NCBI GenBank assembly: GCA_029953675.1
Contig: JAMWBK010000001.1
Span: 2,294,001-2,358,000 of the forward strand
DNA length: 64,000 bases
DNA from: Rhodosorus marinus CCMP1338
Taxonomy: Eukaryota > Plantae > Rhodophyta
Direction: 5' to 3'
The translations under genes were made by a program, and so were the position numbers. Shown one piece after another: positions 1,990-46,815 of this stretch. A model generated the notes under the pieces. The model had not been told where the DNA came from and did not search any database. It saw only the letters and a list, made by a program, of their open reading frames with translations. The stretch's first letter is position 1. Each line of letters begins with the position of its first letter.

Positions 1990-3179
1990 TCAGACAAGTA
2001 ACTGGACGGAGCAGTCAATCACGCGCTCAGGTCAAGCCGCCAAAGTCTATTGTGTTGCAAGGAACAGCTTACCTTTATCGAAAATGCGGTAATCGCCAGC
2101 ATTAGAATGATCTGTACTCCGGAAACTCCCATGTAAGAGTGCTCCGCTACGTCACTGGAATCTACAATACCGAGCGTGACCAAACAAGCACTCGATGAGG
2201 ATGACTCGAGTCCAGGAGGAAAACGACATAGGTGTTGGAAAGGAAGAACAAACCTTGGTTGGAGGTCGACGCTTCGATGTTACGCTTGAGCTCGTTAATT
2301 TGCAGTGAACGTTCGTTAATTTCTTTCTCAATCTCGTTAGCCATCCGTCGTCTTCTCTTCAGAAGCTCCTCTCCTGAATAAGTAGTTGACTTCACGCTTG
2401 CGCTCGTTCTTAAGAAGCCAATGCGCGGAGTTCGAAGCTGTCCAGTTAGTTCTTCCAAGCTTTCCTAGACATTCCCAGAGCAAAGCAACTCGGGCGGAAC
2501 TGGAGTCTCGCGAACTAAGGGGAGCACGCTTACTCTGACGGGGTTATAACAGTTCTGCCTTTATCCACATTCGCTTCTGACTCCATTTTATCGGCGATCT
2601 CCTTCCATTGAGAGTCCTCCCCAATCACCATTTTCACCGGGAAAAGCTGAAAACGTGTAGTTTTCGGTGGAACTTCTTGCCATAGCTATGATACACCAAG
2701 CAGAGACATGAGAGATTCAGAAAAACGCTACAAATGACACAGATCGGTGTTTCCTCTCACGCACCTCGGCAATATCAGCTGACTCGGTTCTGGGCATTGG
2801 GGCAGTCTGAGCAGAGATCAACGGGTAGTATCAAACAGAGGCAAAAGCACAAGCGCTCAGAAATGCAACATCCACGCCTTTCTTTCTCAGAAACATTTGG
2901 GGGTTGCATCACCTCTAAGCGAAACTTGTCCCTGCAGGAGAAGACATCGGGAGGAATCTGCGAATACGCGGTCATCCGAATCACGACCGCAATCTTCTGG
3001 TCCGGAGGGACGACTCCCGCAGGCGGATTCACAGAATATCTTTCCATCTTCGATAACTTCAGCTTGAACAGCACCGGGAGCTCCGACGTAGACTCCAGCT
3101 CAAGCGTACAACTCGCAGGCACGTCCGGAGTGATCGTGAAGACCATCTCCTTTGCGCTTGGCTTTATCAGCGCCTCCAT
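1990..3179 (-). CDS. VAP/MSP-domain protein (VAMP-associated protein-like), multi-exon
   Basis: Exon 1 has the MSP pattern (LELESTSELPVLFKLK...RYSVNPPAGVV...DKFRLEV). A coiled-coil exon follows (RRMANEIEKEINERSLQINELKRN, 2162-2458 frame). A hydrophobic frame at ~2075-2140 (GVSGVQIILMLAITAFSIK) plus LLV* at 1990 resembles a tail anchor. The splice path into that tail is unresolved. Confidence 0.72.
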
Positions 3180-36423: not shown

Positions 36424-38864
36424 GAGTGATTGACGAATTCAAAGCTTGGAGAAAGTTGGGCGCTTCATCTTCGACGGCGAGAGACATGTGCTCCTTTTCG
36501 CTTTTTATTTATTATCTCTTTCGTCAGTAACCTCGAATAGCGAGGAAAGGCCACTGTCTCTCTCTCTCTCTCTCTCTCGCTCTCTCGCGTCTAAATACAG
36601 TCAACAAAATTTAGGGTATAGTACATCATCCCCACCATGGCCCACCCGCCAACCCTGCAAACACCGGGCGGGTGGTGTGAAACCTCATCCGATAAGTCAG
36701 TACAGGTTCAGAACAAAGAATGTAAGGAAATCTCTCAGGGGGAGGAGAAAGGTACACGACTGGGGATGTGCTAAATTGAGGCAAATACGAGGATGGGTTA
36801 AAACTATAACCCCTCACAAACCACAAGAGAAAATCCTTCAATCCTTTTAAAAATAAATTAGAGAACTTTTTCGATGCAAACATCGAGCAGGACAATGCAA
36901 TCTATTCCCCCTCTTACAAAGTTTGCTGAAAATTCTTTATTTTAGAACGACAGACTGTCGTCTAGGGGGAAGCGAATATAAAGTTTTTGGAAATTTTCGG
37001 TCCGGTTTTTTCTTCCTGTTTTTGTTCTTTCGTACAGCGAGGATGGCGGATATCCACATGACTTGACGACAGGTCTGTTTTCAGAAGGGGTTGTTGCCAA
37101 ACTAATTTTCCCACCTCTACAAGTATGTTTTCGAAAAAGTTTTACCCTGGGGCTGGCGGTAGGGTGTTAAAAACGATCGAAATATGATAAAGTGGAATTG
37201 ATTAACAAAATCGTCGTGAAATGTAGATCAGAAAATACTCGTTCTTTTTTGCAACCCCCCTCTACTTTTCTTACTAGAAAGAAGATGTTGAGATGGCTTC
37301 CCTTCCCCCTCCCCCCCCCCGCCCCCGCCTGCTCGAGCGCCCTAATGCCAAATGATTCCCCTTCTCCAGTTACTTCGAAACACAGCTCGAAAAAGTATGA
37401 ATATAGACTATTTGGCTGAGGTTAATACCCAGCCGGAGGTTACCAAAAAGAAAGAAAAAACAAATGCTCTTTGCTACATGAGGTTTTTAATGTCACGATG
37501 GGGTTCATGAAAACATCTCCAACATACTGATTCTTCCAGGTTAGAGAGAAGGGGTTTGAGAATAGACCGGGACTTCTCTCTTCTTCCAGGTTATAGAGAC
37601 GAGGGGGTTAGAGAAGAAACTAGACTTCTACTTGAGTACAAAAGTGATCATTTATCGTCCTTACAACAATGATCTCTCGCGACTGCAAAAAAACATGAAG
37701 TGTACAAATGCTTTTGCTTTTTTTATGGGTTGTCCTTCCCAACACATTCCTCATCAACAGATACAGTTAACTATCCCTCGCTTCCTCCTCCCCCCCCCCC
37801 TCCGCCCAAGCTTTGCACCCCACCTCATCACTTGCATATGGCAAATTTCGGCCCCATTGCATACGTCAACTGACATAAATACCGCCAAACCCCTTCAATC
37901 CTCACAGAAGAAGCATCCCTACGTTATCCATCTCTTCCCCCCAGTTAAAAGATAGAAGAAAAAATTGAAACCTTGACCGACCGGCGTTTCCTTTTCATGA
38001 CATAAAACTTAAACCATTTTCTTCAACACCTCCCCTCCCCATAAAAATGAATAAGCACAAGCAAATTTCAATATAGTTTGACCCCTCTGCCCAAATACCC
38101 GAAGTGGACAAAAACCAATCTTTCATTGATATTGAAAATTTGTTCGTTATCTAGATCACACAGTCCAAAGGGGTAGGGTATACTGTGAGATTTATGTACC
38201 GTAAGACTTGCACCCTCCCCCCCCATTTTTGAAGACTCTAAGTAAACTGTATCTGAAAAAGTACTGTTTAGAATTTACTTCTTTGAGTTCATTGATGCTC
38301 GACGCTTTTAACATGGATCTATTTAGACTAAAAAAACAAAGGCTGGTCGAATGTCAGCTGAGCTATTAGGCAAAATTTTTTTTTGGGTAATGCGTAATTT
38401 TTTTTTACGGAACAGGAGAAGGTGAAGTGGAGGAGACCCGCGGGGGCGGAGTAGAGGTGGATTAAGCTTGTTAGTGTATCGATGTGGATGGACATCCATT
38501 GTTGAGCAGAGGTAGGAGAGAACAGAGCTGTGTTGGGGTGGGGAAGAATGAGGGGACTTAAGGGAGATGACTGGATTGGGAGGTGTGGATTGATTTGTAT
38601 TAGAGTGGTGGTTGGGATTGGGGGGGGCGGGAGGAGGGGGATGTGCTTTTCTGGATTTTGGTGCTTCTGAAACGTGGGACATTGGGGATTCTTGTGGGTG
38701 GGCAAGTTCGTGTGTGTAGGATAAATAGGGATAGAGAAGCGGACAGCGGATGCGGAGAAGCAGATGTGGGGGATGTGGAAGTGGTGTTCAGGTATTGAGT
38801 GGTGTATTAGGCGACGGAATTGTGGAGAGTAGTGGGGTGGGGGAGGAGGGGGGACGGGGGGAGG

Positions 38865-39206
38865 ATGGATCTGAAGCTTCTGTTGAGTACGCAGCCTGGT
38901 GGGGCTTTTGAGGAGAAGAGGAAGAGCCAAGTGAAGAGCTATTTCTGTGAAAAGTGTTCGACGGGGTTTACCGCCAAGGGGAGCTTGAAAGTGCACCTGC
39001 GGACCGTGCACGAGGGCCTCCGGCCGTACGGCTGTGGGGAGTGCAATAAACAGTTCGGGACGAGGAACAACCTGATGCGGCATCAACGAATCGTCCATCT
39101 AAACCAGAAGCCATACTTTTGCGGCGCATGCAAACAGTACTTCGTAACTTTGAGCTCCGTAAATAGGCATATTAGCAGGAAGCACAAGGAGAGCTCTGTT
39201 TCATAG
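38865..39206 (+). CDS. C2H2 zinc-finger protein, 3 fingers, ~113 aa
   Basis: YFCEKC..F..KGSLKVHLRTVH-EGLRP-YGCGEC..F..RNNLMRHQRIVH-LNQKP-YFCGAC..F....SVNRHISRKH; single exon. Confidence 0.93.
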   Translation: MDLKLLLSTQPGGAFEEKRKSQVKSYFCEKCSTGFTAKGSLKVHLRTVHEGLRPYGCGECNKQFGTRNNLMRHQRIVHLNQKPYFCGACKQYFVTLSSVNRHISRKHKESSVS

Positions 39207-39905: not shown

Positions 39906-42900
39906 TTACGCCTTCGTATCCAGCTTTCGACTCTTCAGCCTACGTAATCTCAATCCGTACACGTAAGGCCCTCGAACACCACCGTGGTTATGTCTGTCCC
40001 ATTCACCGGTGACTTCCATTCTCAAGACTTTGCCGAAGAAGGTCTTCATCTTGTAGATGGTTATCTTTTGTCCCTCGTCACTTTGCGAAGCCGCGCGGGG
40101 AAACTGGTCCCGTAGTGTGCACAGCCGTACGTAGTCCTTGGAAGTATGGCGATCCGTGTTGTCTGTCAGCTCGTATGTTTGTTGTATGTACACCGCAAAA
40201 CTGTGAAATTCATGCTTCTCGTCGCCGATCATCCTCTTCATCATCTCATTCCTTTCCGCGAGGTCCATTGACTCGTTACCACCGGCTTCTTTCGCAGACT
40301 TTCGGAGATCCTTTGCGGGACAAAAAGAATTCGAAAACCATTTCGTTTAGCCCGCAGCTCTGTCTCCCGGTTTGTTCACTGCTTGAGCAAACTCAGACAC
40401 AAGCCTACCTCGCTAGTCGTTACGTTGGTTGGGGATGAGCTCGGATGTGCAGAACCACTCATACGAAAGGGTGCGGTGCTCTGCGTCGGAGTGAGTCCAG
40501 AAAAGTCGTTCCGAACTTCGGCGGGGTTGAGTATTGAAATGCCTGCAGTGGGACTTATGAACAACGGCTTGGATTGATGCTTCTGCTCCGCCTACCACAG
40601 ACACGAAGTGAGGATTTGCACAGTCAGCATTCAACGTTCAGTCGCACTGGAGCCTTTTCGTCTTGTTGGCCGGCGTACAATGGTGCCCGGGTCGTCAGAA
40701 CGTAGCTGCCACAGCATGGAAAACTGTTTGTGATTTTCTCGTCTAGATTTGTTTTCAGGATGGTCAGAAACCCTCCCCGAGTCGATTTCCGAGTTTTGTA
40801 TGAGGGACCACCTAAGCACATAGAACGAACATACATGGTCAATATCGATCCAATTCTTAATGTCTAGGAGCGAGCATTTTGAAGACGACATCCGGTACCT
40901 CTTCGGTTGCTGACCACTCAGAATTCCCCTCATCACCACAAGTGCGTTCCTTGCACGTTGTCTCGCAAACGACGCGTCGACTATTGGCGCAGGATAGTTT
41001 ACCCCCAGTCCAACTCCTGCCTCCCGCAGAACTGAGACCGGGGCTTTCCAAGGACAGTGAAGATATCTGCACAAGATGCAGAGTCGAGCACGCGTTCAGG
41101 AGATGATTCCGATTGGTCCAAAGCGGAGGAGCTCGCTACTGTTTCTTTGCCAACGCAACTCACTTGTTCGGCAGCTTGGACAATTCTGGCAACCATTTTC
41201 TAACATAGTAGCCAGTTGGGTCCTGTTTTCTGGCCAACCCGACGGGATTGATCAGGCTGTTGACGGGCAGGGAGTCTGAATTGGATCCAAACGACCACTG
41301 CCATCCGACAATGTTGGACTTCATGTCACCATCTACCAAGAGGTTGAAGAACCTGTTCGCTCCGGGCTGGAATTGATCGGCAGAGAAACAAAGAATGCCA
41401 TTAGACACCGCTTCCAAAGAAACGGGAAAACAGAGTTTGGCACTCACTCACCTGCCATGGCAGCAAGAGGTACTTCGTCAGGAACGAGGCCAGCAAGTAC
41501 CTGAGGATATTGTGTATCCAGCCCGTTGCTTTGAGGTCCCGAAGCGCCGCGTCAACGAGTGGGTAACTGTGTAGGTATAAGCAAATGGTACACGCCTTCT
41601 TCTTGAGCTTTTCACTAGTCTCAGTGGGAGTTGGTATTGAGGTCATTTCTACATACCCGGTACGCGCTTCGTTCCAAGATATCCATGCGTCCTTATCATT
41701 GCTCCAAGGGAAATTCTCATATTGAGGTATGAGACTGTAGTTTGCCGCGCTTGGGTTGTGGTACAAAAGGTGGTGAGCAAACTCTCTCGAGCAGAGGTTT
41801 TTCAGAAATGCTCTGGATGCCTGTGCATAGCCCTCAACCTCCTTCTCGCTGGTCTTCACGCCAAGCTTGGTCATCTGATCAGAACAAGATAACAGTAAAC
41901 CCGCATAGCTTCAGCGACTTTGGTTGGGCTTTCCGACACCAAGCACAGCTTTGAAAGTTCGAACCTGGCTTCTAACGAAGTGGTAAACTTGTCTGGGCGA
42001 TATTTCTCCGAACTGAAGGTGCGGAGAAAGCTTAGAGGTCCCGTATATATCTCTTCGACTCCTTCCTTCGCCAAAAGTCTTGAATGAACCTTTAAGAAAC
42101 CTGAAGAGGGAGTAGAATCCCGGTTGGGCTTGTCAGTCGACAATAGGAGCGGTCCCACGATCCCGTGGCGAGAGCTGAGGTGCTTACTCGCTGAGTTTCT
42201 TTATCGCTGACTTTGATCCTGGTTGCCAGACCCTGTTGTACTGTTCCTCCCGTAGCTTCGGAAGGTCGAGCCCAAGTTCATCAACACTCAGGGAAGGCAC
42301 CGCCTTAGCACAGTCGCCGAGCGCATTAGAACGAAACGTTTAGAAGAAGAAACTTGGGTGGAACTTTGGCGGCAAGGAGTGTTCACCTTGTTCCCTCCCT
42401 TAGTCAAGGGTGCCGGCGCCGGTGCTGGAGTGGGCATCGGCGGCGGAGGAAAGTTCATCCAGGCGGTCATGTAATTGTGCAGCACGGTGAATCGGGCCTC
42501 CAATTCCCACGGCTCTACGAGCAGCTCAGATTTCAGTGACCGCGCGTCAATCCCCTTCAATGTCAGAGTCTGCCTGAGCTTTTCCTCCTGATCAATAGTT
42601 GCTATATTGCACTGTCTATGCCAGTAAACGGCGTCAGCTTCAACCTGCTTGACCAGTTGCCACAGCTGCACCACGGAGAGCAAAAAAGTGGAATAGGAAC
42701 GTAAGCGTTTCCAGTAAGCAGAGCGCAAAGAGACTAAGCGTTCCGGGGTTGTAGCCAAGTAGCTTACTGTTTCGTAAGTATTGGTTGAGTCCATTCGGAT
42801 CACCAGCTTCAGGTTCAACGCGCGCAGGTCGCTATCCAGGCTCAGGAGGGATTTCTTCAACCACCTGAAGAAATTGCGTAATCCAGTACTTAGCTTTAGC

Positions 42901-43492
42901 AAGCATCCCATGGCTGTGTCCTGCTACGCCTAAACGAGAAAACAAACAAAAAGCTTACCAACGCCCGGCCTCTCCAGGGCTCCAGAGATCTGGGTTCCAT
43001 ATGAAGACTGGGATGACCGAGCCTCCTACCACGACAAAATACCCGAAGATTCGATTAGGAGAGGGAAACAAAACGTCGATTGCACAGGTTGGAATTAGAA
43101 CCTCACCTCTCCTCAGTGCCATTGATAGCGCAAGGTGATCCGCGACCCTGAGATCATGGCCTTGGAACCACACGATAGTAGCTCCTTGCTTTCGCGGACG
43201 CTTCGACTTTTTCCAACGTCCATTTGAGTCATCTTGAGCCAATCCCCCGACGCCATTTTTACCGTTCTGTTCCCGATACTTTGCCTTTGTCAGGTCTCCA
43301 GAGGGTGGTGGACGCTTCTTTCGTTCGACATTCGACGACAGAATTGTCGTGGGCACTTGGCTTTGAACTGCTCAGCAGGTAAAACCAGAAAAAAACCATA
43401 ACGAGCAATGAGTCGAATAAAATAAACCCACGCTGCGTTCAAGCTAGAAACTCACCAGCGCGCTTTGATCTATCTCCAACCCCATACTGCAT
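39906..43492 (-). CDS. Plant-type cryptochrome/photolyase-family protein with N-terminal basic extension and long C-terminal extension, multi-exon
   Basis: PHR motifs IVWFQGHDLRVADHLAL, VIPVFIW, WLKKSLLSLDSDL, TSKLSPHLQFGEISPRQV, REFAHHLLY, FPW, TGYPLVDA, GWIHN, LLLPWQ, DGDMKSNIVGWQW, DPTGYYVRKWLPEL, HCPWKAP..AGVGLGVNYPAPIVD. Phase-0 introns link exon 40591-40409 to terminal exon 40310-39906. Confidence 0.92.
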
Positions 43493-43880
43493 CGTTTCAA
43501 AGTCAAGCCCAGACACCGTGCAAAATAGTTTAGGAAAATACTGACAAGCTGTCGCTACTGGACTTATGAGCTCGACAAGAAAGAAAAAGCCCCTCTTCTT
43601 CCACCTTCCGAAGAAACAACTCAACGAAAACAAACCAAAAAAAAAAAAAAAAAAAACCTCCCCCCAAGAACACCCTAGTCCTCCTGCTAACTACTACTCA
43701 ACTCCATCCTCCCTTTCCACACAAACCCACCCACACCCTTCTCTCTTCTCCGAATCCCACACTCTCCCTCAAAAACAAACCCCCACGGCCCCAACCAACA
43801 TCCCCTCACATCCCGTCCGAACACACACTCACCTCCCGCCTATCCAACCCAGACTACCAAACTAAATTCCAACTTATGAT

Positions 43881-43898
43881 ACACACATACACACACAC

Positions 43899-43938
<40 letters not shown>
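43881..43938. repeat. (CA)n/(TA)n microsatellite
   Basis: acacatacacacacacacatatatatacatatatat... upstream of the cryptochrome gene. Confidence 0.95.
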
Positions 43939-43941
<3 letters not shown>

Positions 43942-46815
43942 CTTGTCTTCTCTAATTGCAACATAAACCCCAAACTCTCTCCCCCTCACTTCTTCCTTCG
44001 AAACGGCCCTTCTAAAACAGCTCCAAACCTCCACTAGCACCCTCCTCGTCAATTTAGAAATGACCTCAGGATTCAATCTTACAATCAACAGCAAATATTA
44101 CATTTCTTCTCAAAACACCCCCCCTTCTTGCAACGAGTATTTCAGGAGCTGAGATTGTCAATAATTTATTTATAAATAAAATATATACGTTTTGGTTTTT
44201 TGGTGAAAATAGAACGGGAGGGGTCAAGGGGGGGGGTTTGAAGAGGGTAGTTAGTTTCTGGTTTTTGTTGTTTTTTTTTCAACTGTCTGGGGATGACGAT
44301 GGGAGAGGGTTGTGCGGGTTTGGAGGAGATGAACTAGTCTGTAGCGACAGAGAGTTTTTACGATTTGTTTTTGATGGGTGAGGGGTGGCTGCTGTTCATT
44401 GGGTTTGTTGGGAAGTCTTCGCGTCTTGTTGGAAGTGTGCGGGATAGCTAAAACAGCTGGAGCTTTGACTAGATGTTTGAGTTTCCGTGTTATCGACGGG
44501 CTTTTCTCCGCGAAAACGTTAAGATGTGAGCGGAGGCGGAGAGGGGGGGGGGGAAGGGGGGCTGAAATGGGGCTGTGCTAGTAACTGAGCATTATGCTAC
44601 CCCCTCCCAACCGGTAATGGACTAGAGCACACCTCTTTACCCAACCTGAACTCCGATACCGACGACTTAACCTTCGAGGCTCTTAGTGAATTTCACTGAC
44701 CTCAACGAAGTTATGCTCTTTTACTGAATATCAAAAAATAATCTGATGAGAACAGATTATATCCAATCCGAGGAAACTTGTTGATATGACAGACGTAATA
44801 GCTCCGTTCGGAATAATTATCAAATATAACATGAAAGAATTATGAAAACGACCATCAATATTATTGAATTTATGAACACTTTTCGATGGTGGCGACCTGG
44901 TCTACGAAAGAACAGTCAATTTGGACGAAAACGTCCAATGGAGTGGACAAACCGACGAACAAATTTATATAAATAGAGAACATCAATCAGTTACTTCGAA
45001 ATCGCGTATTTACTTAGTGTTATTCAATGGATATATCGATTGAAATCTTCGGTGTTGTATTGGATAAAAAATGTTTAGTCGTAAACAGACCGATAAATTC
45101 TCTCTTTTTACCCATGAACTATTGAATAAATGTAGAAAATGCGATTGTATGTGCTTCTAAAAAACCTGTCCAATGCACGGCGGGTAAGATTTCCAATATT
45201 CAATCAGAGTTAGTCTAGTAATCAATCATCTTTGATCAGATATTGAATCATGATTACTTTTCGCGCGGTTGGGACCCACGTTCCTGCATTGAATAATGAT
45301 TACTCCTGAGCTCGACAGACTGTCATCAACAATCTAGGGGTTTTTCAGACCACTGCAGTCCCGGCAACGGTGAACGAAGGCAGTGGAACTTGATAAAATG
45401 AGATTGAATTTCAATCAATATCCATTGTTGATTGAGATATATCAGATTGAGAGATATCAGACATCGGTTCAGTCGTTATCGGACAATTATCAGAAAATAT
45501 ATTCATAATAAATTTCCGATTCAGGTCTAAGCCAGAGAAAAACCAACTATTTATTACGCAATTATGGCCCAATCACACCTGATATCGGACAGTATTGGAC
45601 GGTTGTGATCGAACCCATTATGACAACCTTGAGAAAAAGTCTAGCCAAAGTGTGGCATCCTGACTCTTGTTCATGTCTCACGACCCCCTGGCGTACAGCA
45701 CGATAAAGTGGGGTTCTCTCAATTTCTTTTGATAATTTGGAAGCAACGGACTGGAAACCTCTCTCTGCCCGTTCCGAGGCTAAATATCTAGATTTTTTGG
45801 CTCTCCTTAACCTGGAGTTGTTGGAACTCAATTAAGAATAATTTACGTACTTAAGTTCTGTATTCATCGAATGGCTGACTTGAGCCTCGATTGCGTACCT
45901 AAAGCATTCCCTATTTCAAGGGACCCGGTGAATCTTACACGTGTCCAAAATCTGTTCGTCCAACAATTGTGATAGGACAGATTGTCCTATTCAAACGCGG
46001 AACCCTCAGAAGGTGATCTGTAAACTGCAGATGCAAACTGCAGATCACCTTTTGCATAGCAGTGGCTTGTCTGAACGGGCCTTCCGGGTTCCTTTGTAAC
46101 GGTTAGCACATAGGCCTATATCAAATACTATCAAGGCAAGGTGGCACCCTCTCCCACCTTGGAGCACCGGTTGTTTGAGCAATGGAGCACTCTCCACGTC
46201 CATTAAGAAGTCCTCCCATCGTGAAATGCTTATTGTCTGAAAGGTATTCTGATCGTGGTGAAACGTTGTCAACAACACTAGGTTCTGGCCGGGGCAATAC
46301 TCAGTGATAGCACTAATGTAGAGATCTGCCTGTCCGCTTCACTCCCGTATGTTCTCAAAAACTATCTCACAGCCAAGCTCCTGGTTATATTCAATGCCAG
46401 ATCCTTGTCATTAAGACTCAAGTTGTCCTTTCTACGCCTCCGAGCACAGGCTCCCGTCAAAGATGTTGTTGAATGGAAGAAATCCGACTGTCAAGGGTTC
46501 CCATGGACGATCAATCCATCGAAAACACTGTGCCAAGGACGCGAACCCGATTGGTATGTGCCGGTGAAAACTATAGTATCCAACCAGCAAGACGAGGGTG
46601 CTCAATTGGTATCGGTCGATGATTCCCGAAACGCCCACGTTGTCATCTTGGTCCCAACCACACCAAGGCGTGACCAGCCACTCCTTTTGACGGTCGATTC
46701 ACGTCCTCCACTTCAAGGCTCCTTTGGATATCGCCGAGGGGAAAGGGTGAAGAAGTTGGGGACCCAAAATCTTCATCACTTCCTGATTCGAATCAGATCT
46801 GATGTGTCGCTAGCC

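Follow-up and report, generated by a model that had tools for sequence, protein, structure and literature searches.

A red-algal cryptochrome ending in a predicted RFX/primase-tail-like winged helix, a candidate light-regulated DNA-binding protein

The stretch of DNA analyzed here, a window of 64,000 nucleotides from the red alga Rhodosorus marinus CCMP1338 (contig JAMWBK010000001.1, positions 2,294,001 to 2,358,000), contains a cryptochrome gene, NDN08_005570, whose product joins a photosensor to a DNA-binding-type domain in a single polypeptide. The union is documented by transcripts, by the genome annotation and by every long member of the protein family that we assembled; the type of the terminal domain is that of its predicted fold, a winged helix. 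We propose that this protein is a red-algal cryptochrome of the plant type that ends in a winged-helix DNA-binding effector of its own, and that the receptor may act directly on DNA. DNA binding and its control by light are what we infer, and the chances that the proposal is correct seem to us about even.

The coding region occupies the minus strand from 43492 to 39906 and consists of 14 exons (805 codons and a stop), separated by 13 introns of 81-102 nucleotides that each begin with GT and end with AG. Its spliced translation shows zero differences from P0320 (KAJ8908866.1), an 805-residue product recorded as ‘hypothetical protein NDN08_005570 [Rhodosorus marinus]’, so that the window is nuclear DNA of this alga, a member of the Stylonematophyceae. 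A first-pass annotation of the window had proposed that an exon at 40591-40409 is spliced in frame, through an intron carrying CTAAAC, to an exon at 40310-39906, and the phase, the donor and the intron were all found as described. Exon 13 (40409..40591, codons 611-671) begins in phase 0 and reads from AEQKHQ to TTSE without stops up to a GTAGGC donor; it encodes a linker rich in Ser, Pro and Thr that matches no family. Intron 13 (40311..40408, 98 nucleotides, GTAGGC...GCAAAG) has the CTAAAC sequence inside, and exon 14 (39906..40310, codons 672-805) continues the frame with DLRKSAKEAGG...YVYGLRLRRLKSRKLDTKA and closes on a TAA at 39908-39906. The link to the upstream exons, which the same annotation had drawn, with less certainty, through 40780-40590, exists but takes another form: exon 12 (40679..40811, codons 566-610), in which the C-terminal extension begins, is separated from exon 13 by an 87-nucleotide intron (40678-40592, GTACGC...TGGTAG). 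The exon 12 junctions agree with P0320 and with two transcriptome sequences, P0067 and P0324.

The latter two are complete 805-residue open reading frames (ORFs) from transcriptomes of other strains (MMETSP0315 for P0067, MMETSP0011 for P0324). Because they share all junctions with the gene model, over which they are colinear, exon 14 is the last coding exon of the cryptochrome; P0067 is 89% identical to the gene product, with a single one-residue gap. It is highly improbable that the terminal exon is instead a separate gene lying outside the cryptochrome. The exon does contain an ATG-started ORF of 120 codons (39906-40268, ATG at 40268), and gene callers list the exon-14 ORF on its own, as P0319 on an intron-retaining transcript and as P0001-P0006 on short contigs. 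Against this stand the spliced transcripts of the two strains, the genome annotation, which fuses the exon to the cryptochrome, the presence of the photolyase homology region (PHR) upstream in the same chain of all family members of at least 586 amino acids, and homologues whose conservation extends also upstream of the 40268 ATG. A separate transcript for the terminal exon, the outcome named at first pass as fatal to the fusion, is thus contradicted by the spliced 805-residue forms.

The intron-retaining transcript deserves attention in its own right. In the same MMETSP0011 assembly that holds the spliced 805-residue form, transcript 20291 encodes a 681-residue ORF (P0068) ending ...TSREVGQCQSLLKE, with the 120-residue ORF P0319 called downstream of it. 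Reading through intron 13 in the window adds VGLCLSLLKQ and a stop, yielding 681 residues with the tail ...TSEVGLCLSLLKQ. Since P0068 comes from an RNA in which the last intron is kept, a form of the cryptochrome without the terminal domain exists at the RNA level. This RNA is either a possible isoform switch or plain unspliced precursor.

The fusion is not peculiar to this gene. An exhaustive HMMER search with the terminal domain against 1.84 billion cluster representatives returned 62 proteins at E<=1e-3, of which 21 reached E<=1e-30; the best homologues of the exon 14 product, at E ~1e-36, are far above chance. When these results were pooled with those of word-indexed searches (domain E<1e-8), a family of 72 proteins was obtained in which the terminal domain, of ~105 residues, always lies at the extreme C terminus, 0-41 residues from the end. 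A PHR was matched in 46 of the 46 members of at least 586 amino acids, while the 26 PHR-less members are all of at most 550 amino acids and derive from short contigs or partial gene calls. A Pfam scan found PF00875 and/or PF03441 in 7 of 7 long representatives. The linker between PHR and domain ranges from 91 amino acids in Rhodosorus up to 1063. All organism-named members are red algae, belonging to four classes (Stylonematophyceae, Porphyridiophyceae, Florideophyceae and Cyanidiophyceae). They comprise Rhodosorus, with two paralogues, Porphyridium purpureum (‘Cryptochrome-2’), Chondrus crispus and Hildenbrandia rubra, together with Galdieria sulphuraria (‘Cryptochrome-1’), G. partita, G. yellowstonensis, G. 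phlegrea, Cyanidiococcus yangmingshanensis and Cyanidium caldarium. The first-pass annotation had raised the question of whether the domain is always fused to a cryptochrome in algal proteomes: the fusion is conserved, and no one-off, but its range is narrowed to Rhodophyta. Public records describe the family members only as ‘hypothetical protein’, ‘Cryptochrome-1/2’ or ‘Photolyase/cryptochrome alpha/beta domain-containing protein’, and the precomputed Pfam lists for these records hold the two PHR families alone.

Several individual members merit comment. The second cryptochrome of Rhodosorus marinus, P0025 (NDN08_007876, 1021 amino acids), has a PHR 47% identical to that of the window protein and the same terminal domain; the fusion is therefore older than a duplication within the lineage. 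On the GC-rich metagenome contig L002 the terminal domain directly follows a cryptochrome ORF of 1013 residues. The two ORFs, which are in different frames, overlap at 2940-3042 within a (GCG)n-rich stretch; an assembly error, a frameshift or an intron of small size could be the cause. In a related protein, P0005, a Pro-rich linker and the domain are read in a single frame. One possible exception to the fusion is metagenome contig L001, where a complete domain copy (1667-1984) has no PHR within the 1.6 kb upstream, a distance too short to be telling when linkers in the family reach ~1000 amino acids. Flanking ORFs on the opposite strand of this contig match DUF222 and NAM-associated. L001 represents either a long linker or introns, or else a rare non-cryptochrome context.

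What kind of cryptochrome precedes the domain can be judged from the PHR. Pfam places the window protein in the cryptochrome/photolyase family, with PF00875 at residues 76-233 (E=2.7e-29) and PF03441 at residues 354-551 (E=1.5e-66), both held by ORF pieces between 43356 and 40900. The six best matches of the PHR among PDB sequences are all plant CRY1/CRY2 (E 1.7e-97 to 1.7e-94), with the class III photolyase 4u63 (5.9e-89) and then class I photolyases (1e-64) lower down. In the E. coli photolyase, the Glu and Trp of the substrate site bind the pyrimidine dimer. The corresponding photolyase motif, E/Q-x-x-W-R-E-F, reads KNLCSREF in the window (41779..41802, minus strand), with Asn and Ser replacing Glu/Gln and Trp. 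When 36 bacterial photolyase homologues were aligned with the family, Glu was the residue at the first position in 31 of them and Gln in the other 5, and none departed from the Trp or from the motif FR[IV]FNP; the latter motif is VNSLINP in the window. Throughout the red-algal family KN[LM]C[LS]RE[FY] and [SN]x[LI][VI]NP stand in place of the photolyase motifs, and the family thus lacks the signature of a class I/III cyclobutane pyrimidine dimer photolyase. Because these residues, conserved in photolyase relatives, are lost, the PHR would be expected to signal instead of repairing DNA.

The flavin site is of a different character. Here the motif reads DGDMKSNIVGWQW (41295..41333, minus strand), as against DADLESDALGWQY in the plant protein with which it was aligned among PDB sequences: the Asp of plant cryptochromes is here an Asn, which, like the GWQW tryptophans, is of the photolyase kind. 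The Asp that faces the flavin N5 in the plant motif, D-x-D-x-E-S-D-x-x-G-W-Q-Y, is D396 in AtCRY1. Taken by its motifs, the PHR fits a signalling cryptochrome with photolyase-like flavin chemistry. One could alternatively envision a DNA-repair photolyase in which the winged helix serves as a non-specific DNA or chromatin tether that boosts repair. Such an enzyme would account for the photolyase-type Asn and tryptophans, and also for the fact that the nearest non-eukaryotic PHR homologues are annotated bacterial photolyases, with 40-45% identity. We consider it improbable, given that both photolyase motifs are replaced in all of the red-algal family and that the best PDB sequence matches are plant CRY1/CRY2, above the class III photolyase. 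Two Galdieria paralogues of 850-861 amino acids, P0056 (G. yellowstonensis cluster) and P0060 (G. phlegrea), lack the GWQW motif and have an altered D-G-D, and retain the terminal domain; from their sequences, they look like ‘blind’ cryptochromes that have kept the output module.

The first-pass annotation had described the exon 14 product as an ordered-looking domain, an impression borne out by structure prediction. From a 54-sequence alignment of the terminal domain (A1), AlphaFold2 produced a model (model 1) with a folded domain at residues 688-793 (39945..40262, minus strand; pLDDT 82.5, pTM 0.73). In exon numbering, its elements are H17-29, H36-45, E46-48, E60-62, H63-73, H85-95, E116-118 and E120-122. 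On the DNA, they correspond to an N-terminal helix (40262-40224), alpha1 (40205-40176), a beta1 hairpin with the conserved loop YELTDNTDRHTSKDYVR (40175-40125), alpha2 (40124-40092), alpha3 (40058-40026) and a wing (beta2-loop-beta3, 39945..40025) that reads LRMEVTGEWDRHNHGGVRGPYVYGLRL. A second model (model 2), whose target was a Florideophyceae-type sequence 46% identical to the first, has the same order of elements (pLDDT 86.2, pTM 0.78). Both models display an H-beta-beta-H-H-beta-beta topology, that is, a predicted winged helix of the order alpha1-beta1-alpha2-alpha3-beta2-wing-beta3.

Foldseek comparisons of the two models with the PDB retrieved mostly winged-helix proteins. The top match of model 1 was the DNA-binding domain of RFX1 (1dp7; E=4.6e-3, prob 1.00, TM-score 0.66 over the target, root mean square deviation (rmsd) 3.7 A), followed by RFX5 (8zjr_M, E=2.2e-2), and then by the PrimPol of African swine fever virus (ASFV), the E5 protein of monkeypox virus (MPXV) and generic winged helices. 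The top match of model 2 was RFX5 (TM-score 0.66, E=0.34), with mostly Fur, Zur, PadR and MecI winged helices next. In the viral structure database BFVD, about 40 primase-helicases of phages, giant viruses and virophages dominated the matches (E 8e-4 to 3e-2, prob 0.9-1.0). The resemblance to RFX and D5-primase winged helices suggested at first pass accordingly holds at the level of predicted structure, where RFX proteins came out on top twice and D5/P4-type proteins next with model 1; it does not extend to membership of the RFX family by sequence. The DNA-binding domain of RFX1, the origin-binding domain of phage P4 alpha and the primase-helicase tails have been assigned to one structural group of DNA-binding winged helices, and those of pRN1 ORF904 and P4 alpha bind DNA (PMC2777425, PMC10516667).

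In detail, the red-algal domain superposes on RFX (PF02257; 1dp7, 8zjr) with TM-scores of 0.66-0.67 over the target at an rmsd of 3.3-3.7 A, and has in common with it the order of the elements and a wing that is the most conserved part. It differs in several respects: there is an additional N-terminal helix; the beta1 region, in which the conserved loop LT.NTDR.TSKDYVRL lies, exceeds that of RFX1 by 7 residues; alpha2 and alpha3 are joined by a longer loop; and the wing region has a net surplus of ~2 residues (with two residues inserted here and three in RFX). In addition, the domain is fused to a photoreceptor and has no significant sequence or profile similarity to RFX. The D5/P4-alpha/pRN1-type tails are the other recurrent structural match (ASFV PrimPol, MPXV E5 and the BFVD proteins), but they are part of a replication enzyme, their identity to the domain is 6-19%, and no PHROGs profile gave a significant match, comparison of the profiles with the terminal domain producing noise.

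The pattern of conservation within the domain centers on the wing. Ten columns of A1 are invariant, and in 14 more conservation reaches 90% or above. Of the invariant positions, eight (L96, V100, D105, G110, R113, P115, Y118 and G119, exon numbering) are in the wing, the maximum being the segment ...L.VTGEWDR..HGGVRGPYVYG... The fraction of the majority residue is 0.78-0.89 in the wing, the most conserved segment, as compared with 0.42-0.62 in the helices. The core of the domain, 95 residues long (exon residues 30-124), is basic and has an isoelectric point of 9.1 that is also the family median; positive charge is located on alpha3 and the wing, and alpha1-beta1 is acidic. The RFX1 wing reportedly reads the major groove and accounts for the majority of contacts with DNA, as found by Gajiwala et al. 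in 2000. RFX contacts DNA by alpha3 and the wing, with two monomers per site (PMC2777425).

Several observations weigh against a DNA-binding effector. The Foldseek E-values are marginal, the best being 4.6e-3 in PDB and 0.34 for model 2, and the two AlphaFold2 models are not independent because most of their alignment is shared. Exon 14 has no Pfam match at E<=1; at E<=10, a scan of the 54 members yielded nothing beyond noise, and the 25/28 weak families listed do not include PF02257. A profile search of PDB sequences with the terminal domain likewise gave noise (best match uS13m, E=0.5). The direct RFX comparison involved RFX1 alone and a 33-sequence RFX alignment, which is shallow (effective number of sequences, Neff, 2.5) and mostly RFX1-3-like; the RFX1 and RFX5 sequences were taken from the PDB search. 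By hhalign neither comparison was significant (A1 to the RFX profile: P=0.039 local, P=0.014 global, probability <2%). When a global alignment was forced, its 73 colinear columns paired TYE with NYE, FFGK with SFGK, GVRG with GTRG, and VYGLR with YYGLR (this domain and RFX, respectively), also without significance. Furthermore, the net charge is moderately basic, +3 in the window protein and 0 to +12 over the family. Finally, the near-invariance of the wing would be explained just as well by a partner protein that is itself conserved, or by contact with the PHR within the same molecule, and many winged helices serve protein-protein contacts, not DNA.

On this evidence, membership of the domain in the RFX family (PF02257) finds no support at the level of sequence, there being no PF02257 match and an hhalign probability of <2%. 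Since the fold matches and the sequence and profile comparisons fail, we call the domain an RFX/primase-tail-like winged helix, as judged by its predicted fold, rather than a member of PF02257. RFX factors are essentially restricted to opisthokonts and amoebozoans, with one rhodophyte match in a eukaryote-wide survey (PMC10530576); this match, from Madagascaria, is an RFX DNA-binding domain of the canonical kind, with 54% identity to the query, and not the domain described here.

The main alternative view of the terminal domain is that it is a protein-interaction or autoregulatory module, which docks on the PHR in the dark or mediates partner recruitment or oligomerization in the light, so that the cryptochrome would signal via partners as plant cryptochromes do. 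The most conserved surface comprises the wing and the beta1 loop, and its invariant Gly, Pro, Tyr and Trp would suit a fixed protein interface. The weaker Foldseek matches of model 1 include many winged helices such as those of ESCRT-II, the C-terminal domain of Cdt1 and DEP, and the terminal domain is without detectable sequence similarity to any DNA-binding family. Moreover, reviews describe the C-terminal extensions of cryptochromes as effector regions that work by conformational change (PMC8591175, PMC12558739). However, the proteins that match best in structure (RFX, Fur/Zur and the tails of primase-helicases) are winged helices that bind DNA, and positive charge is concentrated in alpha3 and the wing. 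This view is also at odds with the Galdieria paralogues whose flavin site is degenerate: they have kept the domain, which suggests a role for it beyond docking to an active photosensor. We regard the protein-interaction module as a possibility to be taken seriously, albeit a rather unlikely one.

It is also worth considering that the winged helix might bind RNA or single-stranded nucleic acid in place of duplex DNA. RNA-binding winged helices exist, and the primase-helicase tails that match the domain structurally act at replication forks (PMC10516667). Still, the top matches, RFX1 and RFX5, read duplex DNA and there is no sequence pointer specific to RNA, which leaves this reading with little probability.

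If the domain is indeed a duplex-DNA binder, the following sequence of events can be imagined. The PHR would bind FAD, as expected from homology within the family, and sense blue light. The terminal winged helix would be the output module, gripping double-stranded DNA via the basic alpha3 and chiefly via the near-invariant wing, as in RFX. Light might gate this interaction in either of two ways. The winged helix could be freed from the PHR, by analogy with the tails of plant cryptochromes; or photo-oligomerization of the PHR could gather winged helices on repeated or palindromic sites and increase avidity, by analogy with RFX. The PHR-only isoform generated by retention of the last intron could modulate the full-length protein. 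Two clusters of Lys and Arg near the N terminus (RKKR and KKSKR) resemble nuclear-localization signals and are compatible with nuclear import. It is tempting to extend this picture to all red algae and to speculate that their cryptochrome is a sequence-specific transcription factor, in which a blue-light-sensing PHR gates an RFX-type winged helix that reads DNA by its wing, perhaps acquired from a viral primase-helicase of the D5 type, and which is countered by a PHR-only antagonist isoform. This is a tentative extrapolation, and we doubt that it will hold in full.

The remaining features of the gene can be dealt with briefly (all on the minus strand). Exon 1 (43456..43492, codons 1-13) begins with the ATG at 43492. 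Exon 2 (43107..43367) encodes the two basic clusters, ERKKRPPP (43326-43303) and KKSKRPRKQ (43212-43186), and the start of the PHR. Its acceptor is a tandem NAGNAG (gAGcAG, 43367-43371) that offers a choice between 43370 and 43367; the distal site, 43367, is used by the annotation and the transcripts, and use of the proximal AG at 43370 would give one additional alanine in exon 2. The rest of the PHR, delimited by Pfam and the exon table, is encoded by exons 3-11 (40899..43025). In the splice model, exons 3-6 are at 43025-42959, 42864-42768, 42665-42387 and 42303-42188, and exons 7-11 at 42100-41965, 41874-41657, 41566-41452, 41366-41164 and 41066-40899. A second conserved element of the C-terminal extension, LLPSLW[SQ]L, usually followed by ..YD.PP, is found in 21 of 47 long members some 30-60 residues past the PHR; the window version of this type of motif is FSMLWQLRSDD (40723-40691, exon 12).

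As for the neighborhood, a 128-residue ORF on the plus strand (38820-39206) has three C2H2 zinc fingers (PF00096, E=1e-12) and is convergent with the cryptochrome gene, its 3′ end and the stop codon of the latter being ~700 bp apart. The region upstream of the cryptochrome has, at 43630-43660 and 43900-43995, a minus-strand run of ~25 T and a microsatellite of the type (TA)n(TG/CA)n.

These properties invite comparison with known photoreceptors. Plant CRY1/CRY2 (1u3c, 6x24, 6k8i and 6lz3) provide the best PHR matches, at E 1e-97 to 1e-95 over residues 75-555. They share with the red-algal proteins the succession of PHR and C-terminal extension as well as the loss of the photolyase substrate-site Glu and Trp. 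The red-algal proteins are unlike them in having Asn, not Asp, at the flavin site, in being confined to the red-algal lineage, and in that their extension ends in a conserved domain that is folded by prediction, whereas the extensions described so far are poorly conserved and of undefined structure (PMC8591175). The family may be the red-algal branch that is placed beside the plant cryptochromes and left unassigned in PMC9498864, with which it is matched by description only. By description only, too, it can be likened to diatom CryP, also an algal cryptochrome, whose relatives are plant cryptochromes and class III photolyases and whose flavin was isolated as the neutral radical; the C-terminal extension of CryP, in contrast, is of ~70 residues and no folded domain has been described in it (PMC8591175).

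A functional analogy may be found outside the cryptochromes. In aureochromes, a flavin sensor (LOV) and a DNA-binding module (bZIP) are present in one chain (PMC12558739), the arrangement that we propose here. The differences are plain, with a PHR in place of LOV, a winged helix in place of bZIP, red algae in place of ochrophytes, and a red-algal function that is deduced. By this analogy, the protein would be the cryptochrome counterpart of aureochromes, a DNA-binding protein of one component that is regulated by light. Algal cryptochromes and photoreceptors are covered by two recent reviews, in which the C-terminal extension is said to be variable, with an undefined structure, and no cryptochrome fused to a DNA-binding domain is mentioned (PMC8591175, PMC12558739); full-text literature searches in which cryptochrome was joined to red algae and to either winged helix or RFX yielded no prior description. 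What appears to be new is a cryptochrome with a folded effector domain, of DNA-binding type according to the models, that is conserved over Rhodophyta.

A whole eukaryotic phylum, then, has a cryptochrome with a strongly conserved tail that is predicted to be folded and of DNA-binding type. Should the tail bind DNA, the protein would provide a one-protein route from photon to promoter in red-algal blue-light signalling, a poorly understood field, and a function would probably be found for the cryptochrome branch that PMC9498864 leaves without assignment. The protein would then be the first among cryptochromes to possess a DNA-binding domain of its own, and the RFX/primase-tail type of winged helix would have reached a new lineage and a new context, participating in transcriptional control outside opisthokonts and amoebozoans. 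It would also offer synthetic biology a compact, cryptochrome-based, light-switchable DNA binder. Even as a protein-interaction module, the terminal domain would represent a new, undescribed domain family worth depositing and studying.

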